From Octopus bimaculoides (lineage: Eukaryota), in assembly GCF_001194135.2 (NCBI RefSeq), contig NC_068981.1, forward strand, positions 120,101,303 through 120,160,539: DNA of 59,237 nt, given 5' to 3'. The notes beneath the pieces are model-generated. The model was given only the letters and a program-made list of their open reading frames with translations. It did no database searches and was not told the DNA's origin. The translations under genes and the position numbers were made by a program. Positions within the stretch are counted from its first letter, which is position 1. Each line of letters begins with the position of its first letter. Shown in pieces: positions 11,505 to 59,237 of the stretch.

Positions 11505-11945
11505 GAGTACCTGTGGAAGAGGTAGATCTGGGAAGTAGTGATGACAAGTGATTGAGACTTCTGGTGAATTGCTGTGCTTGAGAGGACATGTCAAGCTAAG
11601 CAGAATTGTGGTTGTGGTCAGTGCTGGTGACACATGAAAGGCATCCATGCTGGTGATGCATAAAGGGCACCTATGCTAGCGACACATAAAAGGCACCCAT
11701 GCTAGTGACACATAAGGGGCACCTGTACTGGTGATATGTAAAAAGCAGCCATGTTGGTGACATGTAAAAGACACTAGTTAACTCTGAGAAGTGGTTAGTG
11801 TTAGGGCATCTGACCATAGAAACCGAACCAAAACAGACTGGAGCCCGGCACAACTCTCTAGCTTACCAGCTCCAGCCAAACCATCTAACCCATGCCAGTA
11901 TGGAAAGCAGATGTTAAATGATGATGATGATGATGATGATGACTT
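11505..11945 (+). mobile_element. RTE-clade LINE 3' end with a 26-bp tandem array and (GAT)n tail
   Basis: ACCTGTGGAAGAGGTAGATC...GGCATCTGACCATAGAAACC...CCATGCCAGTATGGAAAGCAGATGTTAAAT(GAT)n, matching the longer copy at 50020-50897 and the minus copy at 40190. Confidence 0.85.
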
Positions 11946-12354
11946 CTGGAATGCCTTTAACTCTTTTGTTACCAATGCACCTGATGTTGCCCTTAATTCT
12001 ATGATGCAAACTTCCTGTTCAAAGTGATCTAAATTAAAACCTTCCATTTAAATTACATGTTAATTTGTGTTCTAAACTCCAGCTTAATCATGGCAAACTT
12101 AGTTTACTAAATTCTTCATTATTTCAAAAATCAATTGAAACAAAGGAAGTTGTATTTCAACAGAAAAAACAATAATGAAAAGGTTAATCACAGATTTTCC
12201 CAGACCTGAAGCTACAAGAGTTTACACAAATTCACAACATATAATGACACTGAAATAAGTACATCACCTGTAATTTCATTGAAAGGTAATTACTTTGCTA
12301 GCCAATACATCATTAATAAATTTATTGCTACAGCAGCTTAAAGAAATGATCTTT

Positions 12355-14667: not shown

Positions 14668-14790
14668 ATGCTTCTTTCAGTTTCTGTTTACCAAATCCAC
14701 TTACAAGGCTTCGGTTGGCCCAGGGCTATATTAGAGGATATTACCTAAGATGCTGTGCAATGGGACTGAACCCAAGACCATGTGATTGAG
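14660..14790 (-). mobile_element. SINE family A, 5' half
   Basis: CTTCTTTCAGTTTCTGTTTACCAAATCCAC...GGGACTGAACCC...CATGTG is the reverse complement of the family A head. Confidence 0.8.
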
Positions 14791-14844
14791 AACCAAACTT
14801 CAATAATTATTTCTCTTTGAATCACTTTTTCATTGTTAATAAAA

Positions 14845-15250
14845 TGTGATTTGCTTCTCAACCACATGGTTCTGGGATCAGTCCCACTGCATGGAACCTT
14901 GGGCAAGTATCTTCTACTATAGCCTCAGGCTGATCAAAGCCTTGTGAGTGGATTTGATAGATAGAAACTGAAAGAAGCCCATTGTGTATATATATATAAA
15001 ATATATGTATGTACTATATCTCTATGTGTGTGTGTCGTGTCTGTGTTTGTCCCACTCCCATCACTGCTCGACAACCAGTGTTGATGTGCTTACATCCCCG
15101 TGACTTAGCAGTTTGGCAAAAGAAACCAATAGAATAAGTACCAGGCTTTAAGAAATAAGTGCTGGGGTCAATTCATTTGACTAAAACTCTCCAAGGTGAT
15201 GCTCCAGCATGACTGCAGTTAAATGACTGAAGCAAGTAAACGAATAAAGG
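14845..15250 (+). mobile_element. SINE family A, near full length
   Basis: Head (slightly truncated), internal TA/TG region, complete tail ...GACTGAAGCAAGTAAACGAATAAAG. Confidence 0.9.
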
Positions 15251-20120: not shown

Positions 20121-20399
20121 AGAAATCTTCTGTATTGGGAACAGCAAGAATTGTAAGAAAGGTCTTCAATATCTAAGGAAACTGGTTGTGATCCGTATCA
20201 AAGACATTGATATTGGATGTAAGGCATTCGTGCATACCCTGAATAATAATAATAATATAATTAGTACACAGCAAGCAATTGGAAAAAACTGGTATTTCAG
20301 TGGATAGAACAGACTGTAGCAAGCAACAACAAAAATTAAAAAGGAATGTATGATAAAGGTTTATTTAATTATTTCCTACAAAATCTAGAAAATCAACAC

Positions 20400-21595
20400 C
20401 TTCAGAATGTAAGTCAGCAACCACAAAGTTTGAAAATGCATTCTCACTGTTGGCATCCATATTACTTTCTTCATAAATGGAATTCTCGACAAATTATTCT
20501 CAGTACTATCAAGGGTATTATAATTGCCACATTTTAAAAATGATTTCACAACTATGTCTTCTTTCACAGTATTCCATGAACTTTTTACCCATTAATACAC
20601 CTATATAATAGATAGGCCACTTCCTTCTTCCTGTTGGTATCACTTTAGAATCTGAAAACTACATCCACTTGTTTTACTCCTTATTTATGAATCCTTCAAA
20701 TGGTTTCCTAACTGAAACATCTGAAGGCTGTTAGTGACTGGTTAGGTTACAAACTGAGTTTTCAGGTCTTCAAATTTCCTCTTAACAAGCTCAGTTCTAA
20801 GAGAGAAAACTGATCCCAGACTGACAAGGCATGTTTTTTAATATTCTACCAAGATACTTGAACCACACTTTATTAAGCCACAGTTTAATTCCTCCATCAT
20901 CTATGCAACTGTTTAGAAGGACATGAACATAAATGCCATTGGGAATTCTTTCTTTGGGCAATGTTACAAAAAATGCTGACAGTTTTGTGCCATCAGTGCA
21001 GCATGCTAATATAACTACGTAATGTGTTTTCTCAAAGCCATATGCTTTAATAGTCACAGATTTAGCAGCTTTGGATTGGATTTTATCATTTGTTTGATAG
21101 TACATCAAATGTTAAAGGGATGTCATCAATATTTGCTATCTGAAGGATCAAAACTAACTATTTTTCTCACATTAATTACATACCTGTGAAGCTTAATGAC
21201 TTTATTTTCGTATTCAGGGCATATTTTTGTGCTATTTTTATTCTATGTCTCATACAGGATTATTTCTCATCATAAATCTTAAACACCATACTGTGACCAT
21301 CTAAAAATCATTGATATCTTTGTCCATTGCTGCAATTTTTGAATACTGCATAATCATTTTAGTGGATACTGAAAAGATTGAGCTTATCTTGTCTTTCACC
21401 CATGTTTTTAATTTTTCTTCTAGTTCAGGCAACTTCACAATTCCTCTATGAAGACATTGTTTGCTACATCTAGCAACTTTCAGCAATTCTTCTTGTTTCC
21501 TCCAAATCCTTACTATTTTGTTGGCTGGTGGTAGACCAAAATACTGAAGTTAAATTCAATGTTATAGCGGTGCTTTTTTATATTTTAGCCATAGA
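20400..21595 (-). mobile_element. pogo/Tigger (Tc1-mariner superfamily) transposase pseudogene
   Basis: Minus-strand fragments: PELEEKLKTWVKD...VSTKMI (HTH CENP-B type), SVTIKAYGFEKTHYVVILACCTDGTKL (DDE_1) and KEDIVVKSFLKCG...LDSTEN (C-terminus); multiple stops and frameshifts. Confidence 0.88.
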
Positions 21596-23760: not shown

Positions 23761-25812
23761 CTCTGGGTCAGAGTAGAGCTGGAAAGAATAGTGACCAAGA
23801 GGTGGTTCTACACTCTGCAAAACCCTGGAACTCCCAAACCAGAGACCCTTCCCCATGAGATGCTGTTTAAAGTCATACCCAGAACCAAAGTATCCAAAAC
23901 ATAGTTTTCGGTCATATACTTTTGGAATATCTTTGAATATATTTAGCATCTTATAGATGCTTGAAATGTCTCCCAAAATTACTTTATTATATTTATAGTG
24001 TAGAAATAAGATGACTAATTGAATGTCATAATGTGTTGGGAGGTTTACAATGATGCAGTTATGGTTCTTTACTGTGCCATCATCATATTAGTTTTTCTTT
24101 ATCCAGTTTCTGCAATTTCGATTGTCACTCAGTTTGACACCAATATCTGGCTCTTGGTGGGGCTTTAGCAGAGTTTACTTTGTTGTATGCATTTGGATCA
24201 GGTCAACTATTTGAGGATAACTTTGCGCCAGTCATGGAAGCCCCATAGATACTGCCCTTCTTCTTCTGACAAATCCATTAACAACTAAATTTGTGGAGAG
24301 TGAGATGAGCTCCCCCAGGATAATTTTGTTTCTAGCACACTACATGAAGATGAAGTCTTTCTATTTGTTTGGCACTTATAGGTCATATAACACCTTTTGC
24401 TTCCATAGACATACAATACCTTTCTTTCAAATAGTTTATAAAATAATGAAGAATTCAGTAAAATGACTTTGTCATTATTAAGATGGTATTAAGATGATGT
24501 ATGAAACAAATTAACATGAAATTTTGATGAAAGGTTCTAATTCAGATCACTTTGAAACAGAAAGTTTATATCATAAAAGAAGGGACAGTTTCAGACCGGA
24601 TCCATACCAAACTGCAACATCTATATTGTCCAAATCTCGTTCTGTTTATGAGATTTTATGTTTCTAGTCAGAATACCTTATCCCTAGTGACAGTTCATCT
24701 AGCTGTTATGAATGGGTACCAGATTATTACAGACCAGACTTGATCAAATGTCTTGATACTTTTTTGCATTTGACTTGCTCCAATTTCTAATACTGGTCAT
24801 TGTTGTTGTTTAGTCACTAGTCAGCTTAGATTAAAAAGATCTATGATCAAAACTATTCTAATTATAACCATCAAGTCCTTTCTCAATGAGACCCAGAACT
24901 AATTATCTAATGTGTTTTTTTCTTAGACAGTGGGGTGGTGATTTGAGAGAGATTTGACTGGTGTTTCTAGAGATTTGAGCAACTGGCAACATAAAAGGTC
25001 TCTTGCTGCTGCATTGAGTGACTAGCGTGCGTGAGTGTGTGAGTGAGTGAGTGAGAATGTGTGTGCATACAATTGTCCATTCCGTATTAAACTCATCATA
25101 TACAGGCATCCACTTCAAGACAGACCCTCTTCCTTGACTATAATATATTTCCCTTATATTGACTGAAATATCTCTGAAAATCAGTTCCATGTATTACTTT
25201 CACTGTCCTATATGTTCTTAACAGTACAGTATATATCTCTTAACATTAGTTTCTCTGTAGATATGAACTCAGTAGCCTTTTATTGATTTTCAATCTGAGT
25301 TCAGAGTCTTTGTCAACATTTTCCAGAGATTGTTTGATTAAAAGCTTCAAAATGTCTGGCACCCTTTAGTAGCAAACAAATAATATATCACTAACTTCAT
25401 TGTGAAATGGCATTTCTATGAACTCTTAAATACAAGTAAACTCACATATATCTACACTTTCTTTCCTTGAACAAAATTGTGTTGTTGTTGTTGTAATTGC
25501 TGCTGCTGTTGTTGTTGTTGTTAAGTTACAGGTTGGTCTTAAATGAGCAGATCTAGGGTTACAGACATTTCAGATGTGATCATCTAGTCTCTTTTTCTTT
25601 TCAAACATACATAACATACTACATTATCTAATGCAACATTCTTTTCTTCAGATAGTAAAGTGGAATTGAGAGCTATTGGACTGCTGTTTTTAGCAGGTTG
25701 AGGGACCACAAAGAAGCCACTTTCATTGGCTTAACTGCAGTGTTTTAGTGTATCTTGTTTTGTTTGAGTCATCATCATCAGCACCATTTAACATTTGTTG
25801 GACAAAAGTTAG

Positions 25813-25924
25813 ATGCTTACAGCACCTAGGTTTCCTAAGCAATCACTCATCTAACTAGTATCGACATTGCTTAACTTCAGTGATCAGAGGAGAACCAGTA
25901 CTTTCAATGTAATATGGATGTAAG
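25813..25924 (-). pseudogene. 5S rRNA pseudogene (or 5S-derived SINE head)
   Basis: Minus strand reads ...CCATATTACATTGAAAGTACTGGTTCTCCTCTGATCACTGAAGTTAAGCAATGTCG...GATGAGTGATTGCTTAGGAAACCTAGGTGCTGTAAGCAT, colinear with metazoan 5S. It shows CpG decay and a deletion in the internal control region. Confidence 0.85.
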
Positions 25925-25997
25925 TGTGTATATCCATATGCACTTATTTTTAATCAGGTAAACCAAAAAAGAATGACTGAAAATAAAGTTATTTTAG

Positions 25998-26361
25998 TAA
26001 AGAGTATTGAATGGTACAACAATGCACTATAATACAAAAAATGGACTATATACTTGTTGTAATTTAGTTATCTATAGTCCGATGATATTTCAGAATACAA
26101 TTCCTTCTTCAGATTTTCTTAGATGGAGTCTCTGCTATAAACTGTTTACTAATGGCTTTTTTTTTCTTTTTTCCGGAAAAAAAAAAAAAGAAAAGCCGTT
26201 AGTAAACAGTTTATAGCAGAGACTCCATCTAAGAAAATCTGAAGAAGGAATTGTATTCTGAAATATCATCGGACTATAGATAACTAAATTACAACAAGTA
26301 TATAGTCCATTTTTTGTATTGTAGTGCATTGTTGTACCATTCAAAACTTTTTACTCTTTAC
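25998..26361. repeat. Long spacerless near-perfect palindrome (~170-bp arms) centred on CCGG at 26173-26176
   Basis: 26008-26174 is the reverse complement of 26175-26344 apart from 2 substitutions and T/A-tract length. It extends by GTAAAGAGTA/TACTCTTTAC across a 7-bp indel. The ORF track shows the same peptide on both strands. Confidence 0.97.
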
Positions 26362-26838
26362 AAACAATACACAATGTTTCAAGCAAACTACAATACTCTC
26401 TTAAAGATATTTTAGATGAAAACAAGAAAGAAATCTCAACTTGAATCTTCAATAATTTCAAATAATTTAACGTAATATTAGAAAACACTAAAAACAGACC
26501 CTAAAAATATAGCAAGAGCAAGTAAAAGGCTATCATTACACTACTTATTTGGTAACAGCTGTATATAAACATCCCAGGTTATTCTGTGAAGCAACAGTCT
26601 TGCCTAGAAGGCAATTTCCTTGTTGAACCTCCGCTGATAACTGCTAGCATGCTCTTATAAACTGACTTATGATCATCTTAATCGTTTTAAGCTGATCTCA
26701 TACTTTCAGCTCAATCTCATTTATAACATCTGTATGGCCTAGTGTTTTAGTCACATGTATCTTCTCTTCTTAGCTGAAGTGAAAGGAGGAATAGATTTTC
26801 AAATTACGAACAGTTTAGTAATGAATTCAGAAAATACA

Positions 26839-26918
<80 letters not shown>

Positions 26919-27149
26919 TCCTGGCCTAATTCTTCGAAACGCTTTGTTTAGAATAGGGGCAGCTGATGAAGGAAATATTCTCTATGTGGCCTGTTTGTTT
27001 TCTGTGCTCTGTTTATGTTTTGTTTTTCATTTTGCCCATGTTTTTTTGTGACGTCCTGTACCCAGATATGCATCTATATATACATGTAGATGTAAGTTTG
27101 TACATACATGTACATCTATATGCATATACTCACATGTTATTTGTATTAT

Positions 27150-27222
<73 letters not shown>

Positions 27223-27403
27223 CATACATACATACAAACATGTACATATATATATACATAATATACACAAGCATGACCACAGCCACATACCTGAAATGAG
27301 TAAAAGAAAAAGTATGTATATATATACGCATATATTTGCATGTAAGTATATGTCTATATATATATATGTGTATGTACATGTGTGTGTGTGTGTGCATGCA
27401 TAC

Positions 27404-27474
<71 letters not shown>

Positions 27475-30691: not shown

Positions 30692-31440
30692 GAGGTCTGT
30701 TGACATAGTAATGAAGCTAAAGCACGCAGAGTGAAGTCACTTGGCACTGATTGACCTTAAACTCTGCTGTGCATGTCCACTAAGTTTTGATATTGTAGCT
30801 TACATCTGCTGTTTACAGCAGTGCTTTGAAGGAAGGTGAGAAATGTGTGATCATCACATTGACCATGACAGAGAAAGTTGTCATGGTGATACCTGCTCAG
30901 AAGCCTACACAAATTTGCAGAAAGTGTATGGAAAGGAGTGTATGAGTCGCACACAAGTGTACAAGTGGTTCAGAAGTTTCAAAGATAGCCAATAAATGTC
31001 GATATTGACAAATGTTCCGGGAGAACTGCAACCAGCTGAACTAAGAAAAACAGCACAGTGGTCTATGCAGCTATGAAAGGAAATCGTTGAATCACCATTC
31101 GTGAGTTATCAGAGGATATGCAGATTAGGTACAGTCCAATTCAGTGCATTATCAATGAAGATTTGGGTATGAGAAGCATGTCTGCCAAGTTTGAGCTAAA
31201 ACTGCTTTCAGCTAGCCAAAAAGACACTTGGGTTTCAGTTGCGCAAGAGCTCCTTGATTGTGTTGAGAATGATGAAAACTTTTTGGAAACTTTGCATAAA
31301 CCTCTGAGCAGATATCACCAAGCTTTTGGCAAAATTTGATGCAATTTCTCAGCTAAACTTTCACTATCATAGTCAATATGATGATCACATGCTACACACG
31401 TACACCTTCCAAGCACTGCTGTAAACAGCAGAAGTGAATC
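30691..31440 (+). mobile_element. mariner element, internally deleted, inserted in a (TA)n array
   Basis: TA|CGAGGTCTG terminus. Transposase HTH fragments ...QKVYGKECMSRTQVYKWFRSFKD and IQCIINEDLGMRSMSAKFELKLLSASQKDTWVSVAQELLDCVENDENFL. Internal inverted match between ~30805-30837 and ~31405-31437. Confidence 0.88.
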
Positions 31441-35634: not shown

Positions 35635-35850
35635 ATGAGCTGGTAGAATAGAATAGTTAGCATGCCGGATGCAATGCTTATCAGCATTTCATCCATCTTT
35701 ATGTTCTGAGTTCAAATTCTGCCAAAGTCAACTTTGCCTTTCATCCTTTTGGAGTTGATAAAATAAGTATCAGTTGAGTACTGGGGTCGATGTAAACGAG
35801 TTACACCCTCCCCTGAAATTACTGGCCTTGTGCCAAAATTTGAAACCATT
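35635..35850 (+). mobile_element. SINE family B
   Basis: GAGCTGGTAGAA...GAGTTCAAATTCTGCC...GGCCTTGTGCCAAAATTTGAAACC. Confidence 0.9.
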
Positions 35851-36109
35851 ATTATATTACTTGGCTTTTGGTTGCCTTTAGCAGTGGCTCTCTGTTGTAA
35901 GCATATAGATCAGCTACCTGATGTGATTATATCTTCCTCCCCTCCTTTCACCAGTCCCTGAAACCCCCAAAAATGTCATAGACACAGCCCTTCTTCCACC
36001 AAATAAGCCTTTAAAAAAAGTTCCTTGCAATATTAAAGATGTGATGGTTTTTAGTAAAATAATTTCCCTAGAGCTATTGGATTGTTTTACACATAGATGT
36101 GAAAAATCT

Positions 36110-37519: not shown

Positions 37520-37699
37520 TATGAAAAGACAAGATAACCACTAATCAACCTTATCATCAACAACAACTAGTATCTGTGCTGGGGGCCATAGAGATGTTTA
37601 AACTCCTAGAAAGCCATGCTTGCTTAGTGGGTTTCAATTCCCAATTGAGCCATTTCGCTTCATATGTTATTTCATATTTGTCTTTCTTAGTTGAAATAA

Positions 37700-37915
37700 T
37701 GGTTTCAAATTTTGGCACAAGGCCAGAAATTCGAGGGTGTGGGGCAAGTTGATTATATCAACTTCAGTGATCAACTGGTGCCTATTTTATCAACTCTGAA
37801 AGGATGAAAGATAAAGTTGACCTTGGTAGAGTTTGAACTCAGAACATACAGATGGATGAAATGCTGCTAACCAGTTTAGCCAGCATGCTAATGATTCTGC
37901 CAGCTCACTGCCTTC
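37700..37915 (-). mobile_element. SINE family B
   Basis: Reverse complement of the family B consensus. Confidence 0.88.
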
Positions 37916-40189: not shown

Positions 40190-41910
40190 TCCATTCATCT
40201 TCCCACATGGCCTCACTAGTTTTTCCCTAGCAAGTTCCTTCCACTGTTAGGGAGTGACACTTCTTCACACAGATCTCCTCATCCATACATAGCACATGAC
40301 CATAGCAGTGCAGTCGTCTCTCTTGCATACCACATCTGATGCTTCTTATGTCCAACATTTCGCTCAGGGCACTTACACTCTGTCGTGTGTGCACACTGAC
40401 ATTACACAACCAGTGGATCATACTAGCTTCATTTCTTTTGAGCCTACGCACATCTTCAGCAGTCACGGCCCATGTTTCACTGCCATGAAGCATGGCAATT
40501 CGCACGCATGCATCGTACAATCTTTGTCACCAGTAGAGGCAGGAGCTTTCTGAACTTTACCCAGGCTATTATTATTCTTGTGGCAACTCTCTCTGAGCAT
40601 CCACCCCCAACTACAGACTTGGTCACCAAGGTAGCAGAAGCTATCAACTACTTCTATTTTTTCCCCCAGCATGTGATGGAATCAGTTTTCTGAGCATCTG
40701 CGGTGTTTATTGCCCCTGTGCATCTGCTGCACACAAAAGCTATCTTCCCGGTTAAACTTCCTTTGATGTTGGTGCACCTCTTATGTGTCCATAGCTTACA
40801 CCTGAAGGGGTTTGTGATGTGTTCGCCTTCCTACTTACTAGGACTTTGGTTTTTGCAACATTGACTCTAAGGCCCTTTGATTCTAAACCTTGCTTCCACA
40901 CCTAAAATTTCTTCTCTTGTTCTGGTAGCGATTCCACTATGAGACCAAGGTCATCAGCATAGAGGAGCTCCCAGGAGGCAGTTTGTCTTTAATTCCTCTG
41001 TTATTGCTTGGAGGACTATGATGAATAAGAGGGGGATGAGGGGTGATCCTTGGTGAACCCCTACTTCTACCTGAAATTCTTTGCTATACTCATTACCAAT
41101 CCTTACCTTACTAACAGCATCCCTGTACAGCTCTTATTAACCACTCATTAATCCACAGTTTCTGCATCGTCCACCAGATAAGGGACTGGGGGACCCTGTC
41201 AAGAGTTTTCTCCAAGTCAACAAAAGCCAAGTATAGGGATTTATCTTTGGTTAGGTATTTCTCCTGCAGTTGCCATACCAGGAATATAGCATCAGTGGTG
41301 CTTCTACTTGGCACAAAACCAAACTGCATCTCATCTCAGCAGGCTTTCTCGCTAATTAGTTGGGCTAGGACCCTGACCATGACCTTCATCACCTGATCTA
41401 GCAGTTTGATGCCCCTATAGTTATTTCTATCTAAAGCATCACCTTTAACTTTGTAGTAGGTGTTGCTACGCCAATCATTGGGTATGGCTCCTTTGTGAAC
41501 TACCTGGTTTACAATATGGGTGACTAGGCCATAACCTACACCACCAAATATTTTAAGCTCTCCTCCTCCCATTCGTTCTCCACATTCAGCAGCCTTTCAT
41601 AATGGCTTCTCCAAGCCTCTTTCTTTTCAGAATCATTAAAAGCAAGTGCACCATCATCCATGTGGACACATTTCTCTCCTGTGACATCACAATTTTCTCT
41701 CACACACTGTCTTGCAATCCGAAATACTTCAGTTTGTTGGTCCTCACGTCGCTGAACATTGGCAAACTTCTTCTTTTCTGCTTCTCCCTTGGCTATCTTG
41801 TACAGTTCCCTGCTACCCCCACTCTTCCAGGCTTCCCAGGCCTGTTTCTTTGCTCTTATGGCATTGTCTACTATATTATTCCACCACCAAGTTACTCTAG
41901 TGTATGCATC
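40190..41910 (-). mobile_element. RTE-clade LINE ORF2 pseudogene (RT plus C-terminus)
   Basis: DALDRNNYRGIKLLDQVMKV; MQFGFVPSRSTTDAIFLVWQLQEKYL...LYLAFVDLEK..DRVP; EVVDSFCYLGD; YDACVRIAMLHGSETWAV...RRLH.YGHV. Stops, frameshifts and internal deletions. Confidence 0.93.
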
Positions 41911-42125
41911 TTTATGTCTGTGTTTGTCCCCAACCACTGCATGACAACTGATGTCAGTTTATTTACCTCTCTGTAACTTAGCAGTTCAGGAAAGAGACTG
42001 TCAGAATAAGTATGAGGCTTGAAAAAAAAGTCCTGAGGTTGATTTGTTCAACAAAAACCCTTCAAAGTGGTACCCCAGCATGGCCGCAGTCAAATGACCT
42101 AAGCAAAGTAAGAGAAAAAGAATAA
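41910..42125 (+). mobile_element. SINE family A, 3' half
   Basis: GTGTTTGTCCCCAACCACTGC...CAGCATGGCCGCAGTCAAATGAC. Confidence 0.85.
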
Positions 42126-46080: not shown

Positions 46081-46563
46081 GTGCACAAATACAAATAACA
46101 GGACATAACAACAGGTGTCTTTTGACTAAGGACAAATTAATTTAATTTGGCGTGTGTGGAAATAGAGCCTTATGGCAGGGATACAAGATTTCACAGGCAC
46201 AGGGAGGAATATAGATGTTGCACGGACAATGGCCGAACCAAGAAAGAAAGATCAGGCTTGGCTGAACACCGGTCATGTGGGGGAGAGAAGAGAGAGAGTT
46301 AGAGGCAGAGGGACAGAAGATTTAAGGAGGGGTGATAAAAAATGACAGGTACACAGTGAAGTGAAAAGAGGAGGGAAAGTGAGCAAGGCTTTACTTCCAT
46401 ACACGCCAGCTTAATTTAATTCGTCCTTAGTCGAAAGACACCTGTTGTTATGTCCTGTTATTTGTATTTGTGTAACATTCTGTTTTTTTTTCCATCCTTG
46501 TTTTCGTATACATTCGCTGCTTTTTTTCCAAGGAATCTAATGCTCTTAGCTTAGTTTTTCCTT
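46081..46563. mobile_element. Penelope-like repeat with an internally inverted partial copy
   Basis: 46087-46171 and 46385-46470 are reverse complements; the second block continues as the inverse of 43075-43200 up to the gap. Confidence 0.6.
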
Positions 46564-49109: not shown

Positions 49110-49335
49110 TATATATGTATGTATGCGTGTGTGTGTGTTTGTCCCCCCAACATCGCTTGACAACCGATGGTGGTGTGTTTACGTCCTCGTAACTTAGCGG
49201 TTCGGCAAAAGAGACCGATAGGATAAGTACTAGGCATCCGAAGAATAAGTCCTGGGGTCGATTTGCTCAACTAAAAGGCGGTGCTCCAGCATGGCCACAG
49301 TCAAATGACTGAAACAAATAAAAGAGTAAAGAGAG
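48858..49335 (+). mobile_element. Young SINE family A copy (CpGs retained), spanning a gap
   Basis: GGCACAGGAGTGGCTGTGTGGTAAGTAGC...GGTTCCCGGTTCA...GAAGCCCGTCGTATA(N)(TA)n...CAGCATGGCCACAGTCAAATGACTGAAAC. Confidence 0.93.
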
Positions 49336-49341
49336 TATATA

Positions 49342-49773
49342 CATTGAAGAAAAGGAGACAGTCAGAATTTTGGATAATTCTTTATTAGCACTTTCATTTG
49401 TTTAAAAACTCATCAAGACAAAATCAAAATGGTAAAGAAACCCATTTCGTTGTTCATCTATCCTTACCCTATCCTTTATTATTATTATTATTTTTTCTCC
49501 ACTTTCTTGATTGTCCTAAAACCATCTCTCTATCCATTCCACCCACCTCCACTGCTTTGCTTTTCTTTCTTTCTCTCTTTCCCTTTTTCCAAAAAACAAA
49601 AACAATATTCTTCTCTTCTAAACAAAACAAAACAAAAAAGCATCCAATTCATATAAATGAACAATGAAACGTTCTGTTTTTACCATTTTGATTTTGTCTT
49701 GACAAGTTCGTAAATGAATGAAAGCACTAATAAAGGATTATCCAAAATTGCAACTGCCTCCTTTTTCTCAATA
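49342..49773. mobile_element. Tc1/mariner-type MITE with ~120-bp TIRs and TA TSD
   Basis: TA|CATTGAAGAAAAAGGAGACAGT...CAAGACAAAATCAAAATGGTAAA versus ...TTTACCATTTTGATTTTGTCTTG...ACTGCCTCCTTTTTCTCAATA|TA. Confidence 0.82.
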
Positions 49774-50019
49774 TACAATATCTGTTCATCTCTTCAAACA
49801 CTCTGCACACACACACACACGTATATGGGAAAAGATCAGAAAACACATAGTAAACTGAGTCACCAACTTGTTCCATTCACCAAAAGATTTCCAAGGCACC
49901 AGCAGGCCTCAAAAGACATTCATGTCCATAGAACATGATTACTACTTTATTTAACCCTCATTTGTCATTCATGATGACATTCATTATATATATATTTGTC
50001 ATTTGTCATTCATTATATA

Positions 50020-58474: not shown

Positions 58475-59237
58475 CCGACCCCACCAAACGTTTTGAATGC
58501 CACAGGATGGAAAATGTAGTTGGCTGACAGATCGTGGTATTTCAGGATTTTGTTCCGCTTGGCCGCAGAAGCTGTGAATCTTGCCCTGACCACAGCATCC
58601 AGGATGTGAGAAGAAGCAAAGGAGTCGCTAACGTGACATCCCAGACAAGGCATCTGCCTTGCAACCAGAGGCACAGGGTGAGGCCGTCAGGTCTCTTCCC
58701 ATCACATCTGGACAATCCAGATGGTTCCAAGATGGAGGGGACCGATTGTGAGCACGCCTTTGCAGTAAAACAGTGAAGGGTGCAGCCAATTGCGATGGGG
58801 CGCAGGTCTCCATTGGGTTTGGTGAGCCTGAATAATTTTGCACCGAAGAATAGTGGGCGGATATAAGGAAGGATGTTTGCTGAAGAGAACTGATTCACAA
58901 ACTGAGTCAAATTCTCCAAGAGCTCAAGTCCGGCATCACCAGCTGATAAGGAGATACCATACTTTAGGTGTTGAGGCTGAAGGCCATCAATTCCTGCACC
59001 TGAACCAGTAAGGAAGAATGAAATCACCTTTCTGATGTTATCAGAGGTGAACACCGGTCACAAGTATTCTGGGGGATTGGGCCAATTTAGTTGATTATTA
59101 GTGGGTGCTGGTGGGAGCTTCTTTTTCAGACATCTAAGAGACTCAGAGTCACACAGAGCAAGAGAGGAGTCGGACAGCCCCTTTTATGTTGAATTTGCTG
59201 AATTTAGCATTGACTGCACGCTTAAGGTTTATTGGTT
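58475..59237 (-). mobile_element. CRE-clade (RLE-bearing) non-LTR retrotransposon fragment with a large internal deletion
   Basis: [15 protein letters not shown]...[25 protein letters not shown] (RT domains 0-2) runs directly into [30 protein letters not shown], then (frameshift) ...[23 protein letters not shown] (PD..D restriction-like endonuclease). Confidence 0.85.

Follow-up and report, generated by a model that had tools for sequence, protein, structure and literature searches.

What is the long, nearly perfect palindrome at this locus, how might it have arisen, and does it do anything? We addressed these questions within the window, by which we mean the whole stretch of 59,237 nucleotides that was analysed; all positions are counted from its first letter. 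The window has a GC content of 35%, is dense in microsatellites and contains seven N runs of 10–803 nt. Long (TA)n, (ACAT)n and (GT)n arrays are present, for example at 26834–26920 and 27150–27470. The observed/expected ratio is 0.25 for CpG and 1.05 for GpC, a composition that implies heavy germline methylation of CpG followed by its decay. No recognisable gene was found at the palindrome, where the local open reading frames are short and have no Pfam matches.

The initial annotation described a palindrome with a CCGG centre set between T- and A-tracts. A repeat finder recovered this structure, as did aligning the left arm, with gaps allowed, to the reverse-complemented right arm; the alignment extended it to ~380 bp, at 25990–26369. 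The repeat finder returned core arms of 177 nt each (25996–26172 and 26179–26355) that are 97% complementary and 6 nt apart. No other inverted repeat of the window is as long, and none comes close to it in tightness. Its parts are as follows.

Left arm, 25990–26172, plus strand: an outer, more divergent 17 nt (25990–26006), a core (26007–26156) and the tract T9-C-T6 (26157–26172).
Centre, 26173–26176, no strand: CCGG, lying within a perfect 16-bp palindrome, TTTTTTCCGGAAAAAA (26167–26182).
Right arm, 26177–26369, plus strand: the tract A13-G-A4 (26177–26194) and a core (26195–26344), continuing into the distal end given next.
Distal end of the right arm, plus strand: seven extra nucleotides, AACTTTT (26345–26351), and an outer part (26352–26369).

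The centre is perfectly symmetric for 16 bp only; beyond this the two tracts run out of register by 2 nt. Because the T- and A-tracts differ by 2 nt, the axis of the arms (26175.5) is offset by 1 bp from the axis of the CCGG (26174.5). The earlier description of the palindrome as spacerless thus holds only insofar as the T-tract and the A-tract are free to pair in whichever register.

The symmetry is highly significant. Predicted folding energies were −277.7 kcal/mol for the plus-strand RNA, −271.1 kcal/mol for the minus-strand RNA and −187.6 kcal/mol for the DNA, with z-scores of −39 to −41 and no shuffled sequence folding equally well. In the plus-strand fold both substitutions between the arms form G·U pairs and in the minus-strand fold both are A·C mismatches, just as the initial annotation had proposed. 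The palindrome is therefore a true feature of this sequence, far beyond chance, and the folding models indicate that it should extrude a cruciform or form a hairpin. The symmetry also ends sharply: outside 25989 and 26370 the two flanks give alignments no better than those of shuffled sequence, and the left flank compared with the reverse-complemented right flank scored below the shuffle mean at both 60 and 120 nt. AT enrichment is modest, with 72% AT in the palindrome and 75% in its central 60 nt compared to 65–69% in the 500-bp flanks.

The differences between the arms carry much of the information about their history. Those listed earlier, namely two T/G substitutions, a difference in tract length and a near-terminal 7-bp indel, were all present in our arm alignment, and three of them can be placed as follows.

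Substitution 1, T26030 opposite G26321, plus strand: a transition, read as G·U in plus-strand RNA and as A·C in minus-strand RNA.
Substitution 2, T26153 opposite G26198, plus strand: a transition, with CpG in the right arm (26197–26198) and TpG in the left arm.
7-bp insertion, 26345–26351, plus strand: AACTTTT, in the right arm only, a tandem duplication that reads GTAAAGA|GTAAAAA on the sense strand of the arm.

At both substitutions the left arm has T and the right arm G, and the step from CpG to TpG at the second has the pattern that decay of methyl-CpG would leave. The tandem duplication is, to judge by its sequence, a signature of replication slippage. The outermost 8 nt of the arms add one 1-nt indel and one mismatch. 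In total, three events fall in the outer 18 aligned columns and two in the inner 150 (Fisher p = 0.009), such that the interior of the arms is 98.7% identical and its inner 150 nt differ by the two transitions only (1.3%). The central tracts, T9-C-T6 (26157–26172) and A13-G-A4 (26177–26194), correspond to T9CT6 versus T4CT13 when read in the same sense. This is not a simple homopolymer error and indicates that the arms are not copies of one another made by an assembler or a polymerase.

We then asked whether the arm occurs elsewhere. In a blastn search with a word size of 7, the only matches to 25900–26460 were the region itself, its reverse complement and noise from the A/T tracts, so that the arm has no further copy anywhere in the 59-kb window. 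The 5.5-kb neighbourhood of the palindrome matched the rest of the window only through SINE-related sequence. The statement in the initial annotation that this is non-repeat sequence, lacking homology to other repeats of the window, is borne out by these searches, and the search that it had suggested for an unpaired source or target of the arm recovered none in the window. It had also reported no target-site duplication (TSD), and a TSD search over all boundary combinations agreed, finding no direct repeat of at least 3 bp at symmetric boundaries. The dinucleotide TA is present at both ends (25990–25991 and 26368–26369). From its sequence it could be a Tc1/mariner-type TSD; TA is self-complementary, however, and as a TSD is thus not separable from the palindrome itself.

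Outside the window, a 23-mer scan of metagenome contigs with the arm gave no matches, and the sole 22-mer match was a chance 22 nt in a bacterial contig of 63% GC. Viral contigs and GTDB genomes contained no relatives of the palindrome, and plasmids and phages gave no blastn match. None of these collections (metagenome, viral, GTDB, plasmid and phage) is a database of eukaryotic genomes, and the negative result therefore says little about how many copies the host carries. Among 1.84 billion protein representatives, the sole match to the arm’s 71-aa open frame was to a tandem-repeat protein over a 17-residue low-complexity stretch, which we regard as spurious. Two further candidate origins were considered and rejected. 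The heptamer CACAATG, which resembles the Transib/RSS consensus, adjoins the right end at 26370–26376 and might point to a Transib/RAG-like origin; no CATTGTG partner follows downstream in the window and we consider it a coincidence. A pair of retroposons joined poly(A) tail to tail is likewise a poor match, with T tracts at the 3’ end of the inward-reading strand of each arm and a 3’ poly(A) on neither.

We tentatively favour the view that the palindrome arose by a genuine local inverted duplication, recent in evolutionary terms, in the non-coding DNA of a repeat-rich animal genome. What we observe is the structure of the palindrome, its abrupt ends, its lack of further copies in the window and the way in which its arms differ; from these we infer that it is real in the organism and how it arose. 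The duplication could have started from a stretch of ~190 bp that ended in a T-rich tract followed by a short self-complementary motif, TTCCGGAA. While DNA was being replicated or a break repaired, a nascent 3’ end would fold back, or switch to the complementary strand, at TTCCGGAA, copy the stretch just made and return to the original template at ~26369/26370. A single such fold-back event would yield a palindrome without a spacer. The arms would afterwards have gained the two transitions, one of them a CpG decay, by ordinary post-duplication decay, while slippage would have altered the homopolymer tracts and added the 7-bp tandem duplication near the outer junction.

The abrupt end of the symmetry fits this model because a copied block with a defined return junction is expected to end in this way. 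Error-prone, slippage-rich synthesis beside breakpoints is a trace of replicative template-switch mechanisms, whereas the termini of a recently mobilised transposon are expected to be its best-conserved part. Thus the concentration of differences at the junctions, together with the rearranged central tract, favours fold-back or template-switch synthesis over a recently mobilised transposon. Template switching is known to create perfect hairpin-forming inverted repeats in one event (PMC10710096), and inverted duplications arise by template switching at short inverted repeats (PMC10766183, PMC7999016). Several points count against the inverted duplication. Stems documented for short-range template switches are mostly tens of base pairs long, with 30–55 nt in one screen (PMC10710096), and arms of ~190 bp, as delimited here by alignment, would be long for that class. 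Any spacerless palindrome has a palindromic centre, and so finding TTCCGGAA or TTTTTTCCGGAAAAAA there is not independent evidence of a switch point. Furthermore, the arm is single-copy only within one 59-kb window of a gigabase-size genome, and the scaffold is a draft with seven N gaps.

The palindrome may instead be a fold-back MITE, that is, a non-autonomous DNA transposon made up almost entirely of two long terminal inverted repeats, recently inserted at a TA site and mobilised by a Tc1/mariner-like transposase encoded elsewhere. We think this rather unlikely, even though its length of 380 bp, its AT content of 72%, its hairpin potential and its non-coding nature all fit, and TA is present at both ends. 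The whole unit consists of terminal inverted repeats, although this is trivially true of any palindrome. Tc1/mariner elements are the most numerous recently active TIR group in octopus, where structurally defined single-copy ‘MITEs’ have also been reported (PMC13282606). The window holds other MITE-like inverted repeats (367–1229, 14670–14978, 46084–46472, 49329–49786 and 30802–31435), which gives a transposon origin an appreciable prior probability in this genome. The other inverted repeats of the window, however, all have spacers of 167–1841 bp and arms that are 81–91% identical, and are thus a different kind of object. The palindrome also lacks a TSD that can be told apart from its own symmetry, and has no further copy or fragment in 59 kb and no relative in the searched collections, which hold no eukaryotic genomes. 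Its termini are the least conserved part, with a 1-nt indel, a mismatch and the 7-bp duplication within the outermost ~25 nt, whereas a recently mobilised element should show the reverse. This gradient of divergence, from a near-identical interior to more changes in the outer ~25 nt, is also what we might see if the palindrome were older and its arms had been kept near-identical by arm-to-arm gene conversion or hairpin-templated repair, with the outer edges escaping. This would cover the suggestion in the initial annotation that the structure may be homogenised; however, the symmetry stops at the flanks rather than fading, and a spacerless palindrome of great age, being unstable, should by now have lost its centre by deletion, which makes such a history improbable. 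A further possibility is that the palindrome is an artefact of assembly or library preparation. The organism would then have one arm; the second would have come from a fold-back or chimeric molecule or, alternatively, from faulty gap closing or graph traversal when a draft was assembled from short reads, and the differences between the arms would be the two alleles of a heterozygote. The scaffold is indeed a draft with seven N runs of variable length, and palindromes are described as notoriously hard to sequence and assemble (PMC4057610). SNPs, homopolymer length and a small indel are also typical differences between alleles. The earlier claim that these differences argue against an assembly fold-back is therefore a good one, the arms being distinct sequences, but it is not decisive, given a draft scaffold with gaps and differences that could also separate two alleles. 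Nevertheless, the palindrome occupies the middle of 28 kb of sequence free of gaps (14615–42857), at least 11 kb from the nearest one, and runs into two different, non-palindromic, unique flanks where a chimeric molecule would stay symmetric to its end. An assembler can cross the centre only if a unique centre sequence exists in the reads, and the rearrangement of T9CT6 versus T4CT13 would be an atypical sequencing error. On balance we consider an artefact unlikely.

Whatever its origin, the palindrome could also act as a functional hairpin-RNA gene, in which a Pol II transcript folds into a ~180-bp duplex that is diced into endo-siRNAs against a related target or serves as an ADAR substrate or sponge. 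This can overlap the other readings. The predicted hairpin is extremely stable on both strands, and both substitutions stay paired as G·U on the plus strand; given that both are transitions, however, the probability of two G·U-compatible changes by chance is 0.25. Hairpin RNAs (hpRNAs) are known as evolutionarily young inverted duplications (PMC10317233), and the abundance of dsRNA correlates with A-to-I editing across Metazoa (PMC5625713). Against this, there is no target or parental sequence in the window and no protein-level relative of the arm in the collection searched, and the homology between arm and target that defines such genes was thus not found. The Rfam miRNA covariance models all matched below their gathering scores, and these matches reflect pairing only; the best, MIR7504 (68.1 bits against 83) and MIR6425 (65.9 against 142), are both plant families. 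Given these sub-threshold, structure-only matches and a perfect duplex of more than 150 bp, which is not miRNA-like, we rejected a canonical miRNA precursor; indeed, miRNA criteria flag duplexes of over 32 nt (PMC12553114). T-runs of 9 and 6 nt on the plus strand, and of 4 and 13 nt on the minus strand, stand just ahead of the centre. Such runs of at least four T, present on either strand, would stop Pol III ahead of the second arm, so that it could not make the hairpin. An AATAAA hexamer also lies directly 5’ of the left arm on the plus strand. The proposal of a Dicer/ADAR hairpin-RNA locus in the initial annotation thus gained no support from the window, from the search for relatives, from the miRNA models or from the Pol III-stopping T-runs, and we regard a functional gene of this kind as highly improbable. 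The most specific version, a newborn hairpin-RNA gene formed by one-step inverted duplication in a transcribed region and yielding a ~180-bp duplex that is diced or heavily ADAR-edited, is likewise very improbable. If true, it would mean that the de novo birth of a regulatory dsRNA had been caught outside Drosophila, in an invertebrate and possibly a cephalopod. If the palindrome does lie within a Pol II transcript, an RNA duplex of ~180 bp would be open to Dicer and ADAR, but as a by-product, and we infer that the palindrome has no function of its own.

Returning to the local inverted duplication, we compared the palindrome with known systems. By analogy, it is mechanistically closest to the inverted duplications made by template switching or fold-back and physically closest to the palindromic AT-rich repeats of humans (PATRRs). 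The template-switch set comprised Ripley-type quasipalindrome correction, the TSMs of Loytynoja and co-workers (PMC10710096, PMC7954356) and ODIRA (PMC10766183). Like these, the palindrome has a reverse-complement copy beside its source with sharp outer junctions, small slippage errors near the junctions and, as any spacerless palindrome would, a short self-complementary motif at the putative switch point. Unlike the short-range TSMs, its arms of ~190 bp are several times longer, and they are far shorter than ODIRA amplicons.

The human PATRRs (PATRR11, PATRR17 and PATRR22) are near-perfect AT-rich palindromes of ~190–600 bp (PMC1851657, PMC4940405), and central symmetry governs their cruciform extrusion and breakage (PMC1851657). 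The palindrome resembles them in being near-perfect, a few hundred base pairs long and non-coding with an AT-rich centre, but has no sequence homology to them, is only modestly AT-enriched (72%) and has a symmetric centre of just 16 bp. If it behaves as the human PATRRs do, its expected behaviour is physical and not genetic, consisting of hairpin or cruciform extrusion, replication stalling and deletions from breaks at the centre. The cruciform or fragile site suggested in the initial annotation would accordingly be a reasonable physical consequence of the palindrome. A further comparison is human Made1, a palindromic MITE that is the source of mir-548. The palindrome shares with Made1-type MITEs and fold-back elements a short, AT-rich, non-coding and hairpin-capable body made nearly entirely of inverted arms, possibly with TA ends, and differs from palindromic MITEs in having no separable TSD, no copies in the searched DNA and termini that are less conserved than the interior. 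In Drosophila, hpRNA loci give Dicer-2-dependent siRNAs from a primary transcript whose arms are homologous to a target gene (PMC10317233). The palindrome is similar to these loci as a presumably young inverted duplication with arms of a few hundred base pairs and the potential for long dsRNA, but its arm has no homologous target in the window or in the protein collection.

The palindrome is thus a new instance of a well-known class, that of fold-back or palindromic DNA, and its importance is modest. If real, it would illustrate cleanly, in a natural genome, how one mutational step can give rise to a long sequence that forms a perfect hairpin; such sequences supply raw material for hairpin-RNA genes and act as breakage hotspots. 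Instability makes near-spacerless palindromes with arms of over 150 bp rare, and clone-based assemblies lose them. Each verified case from a short-read assembly would therefore help research on unstable genomes and the validation of assemblies.

The window contains several SINE copies, one of which lies to the left of the palindrome.

SINE with a 5S-rRNA-like head, 25756–25925, minus strand: matches RF00001 with 53.3 bits (25925 to 25814) and lies 64 bp left of the palindrome.

Its (TGA)n/A-rich tail includes ATGTTAAATGGTGCTGATGATGATGA and an A-rich stretch, and the SINE is bounded by the direct repeats GATA(TA)CAC. Since these repeats flank the SINE itself and 64 bp separate it from the palindrome, we take it for a separate insertion and rejected the idea that the palindrome is part of it. 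At ~11750–11950 on the plus strand, a SINE of another, non-5S type also ends in this 3’ tail motif, and the occurrence of the motif in both 5S-headed and non-5S SINEs suggests, on the basis of sequence, a shared LINE partner.

Other repeats of the window include four MITE-like units (367–1229, 14670–14978, 46084–46472 and 49329–49786) with spacers of 167–573 bp and arms that are 81–91% identical. The unit at 46084–46472 has clean 88-nt arms beginning CACAAATAC, and the arms of 14670–14978 resemble the 5’ part of a high-copy tRNA-like SINE. An imperfect, long-armed inverted structure occupies 30802–31435; its arms (~30802–30923 and 31281–31435) are 75–94% complementary over three collinear blocks. 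A plus-strand open reading frame that overlaps it (31091–31336) has no Pfam match and by eye presumably resembles the HTH of a mariner transposase, and the structure could derive, by fold-back, from one end of a DNA transposon. On the minus strand at 20388–21549, three collinear ORF fragments have no Pfam match at E ≤ 0.01; we take them, by eye, to resemble a pogo/Tigger-type DDE transposase with its HTH. Degenerate fragments of a non-LTR retrotransposon reverse transcriptase are present on the minus strand at 40200–42000, with two weak, sub-threshold Pfam matches to RVT_1 at 40–42 kb. The minus-strand region 58540–59237 has no Pfam match and shows 80% DNA identity to short Logan contigs from runs SRR11869384/85/90/91, and by eye we assume it to be RT-like. 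Finally, a pair of tRNA-type SINEs (35650–35853 and 37695–37898) with the B-box-like motif GAGTTCAAATTC lies in inverted orientation, 82% identical and 1.8 kb apart, and could potentially form a long-range dsRNA if co-transcribed.
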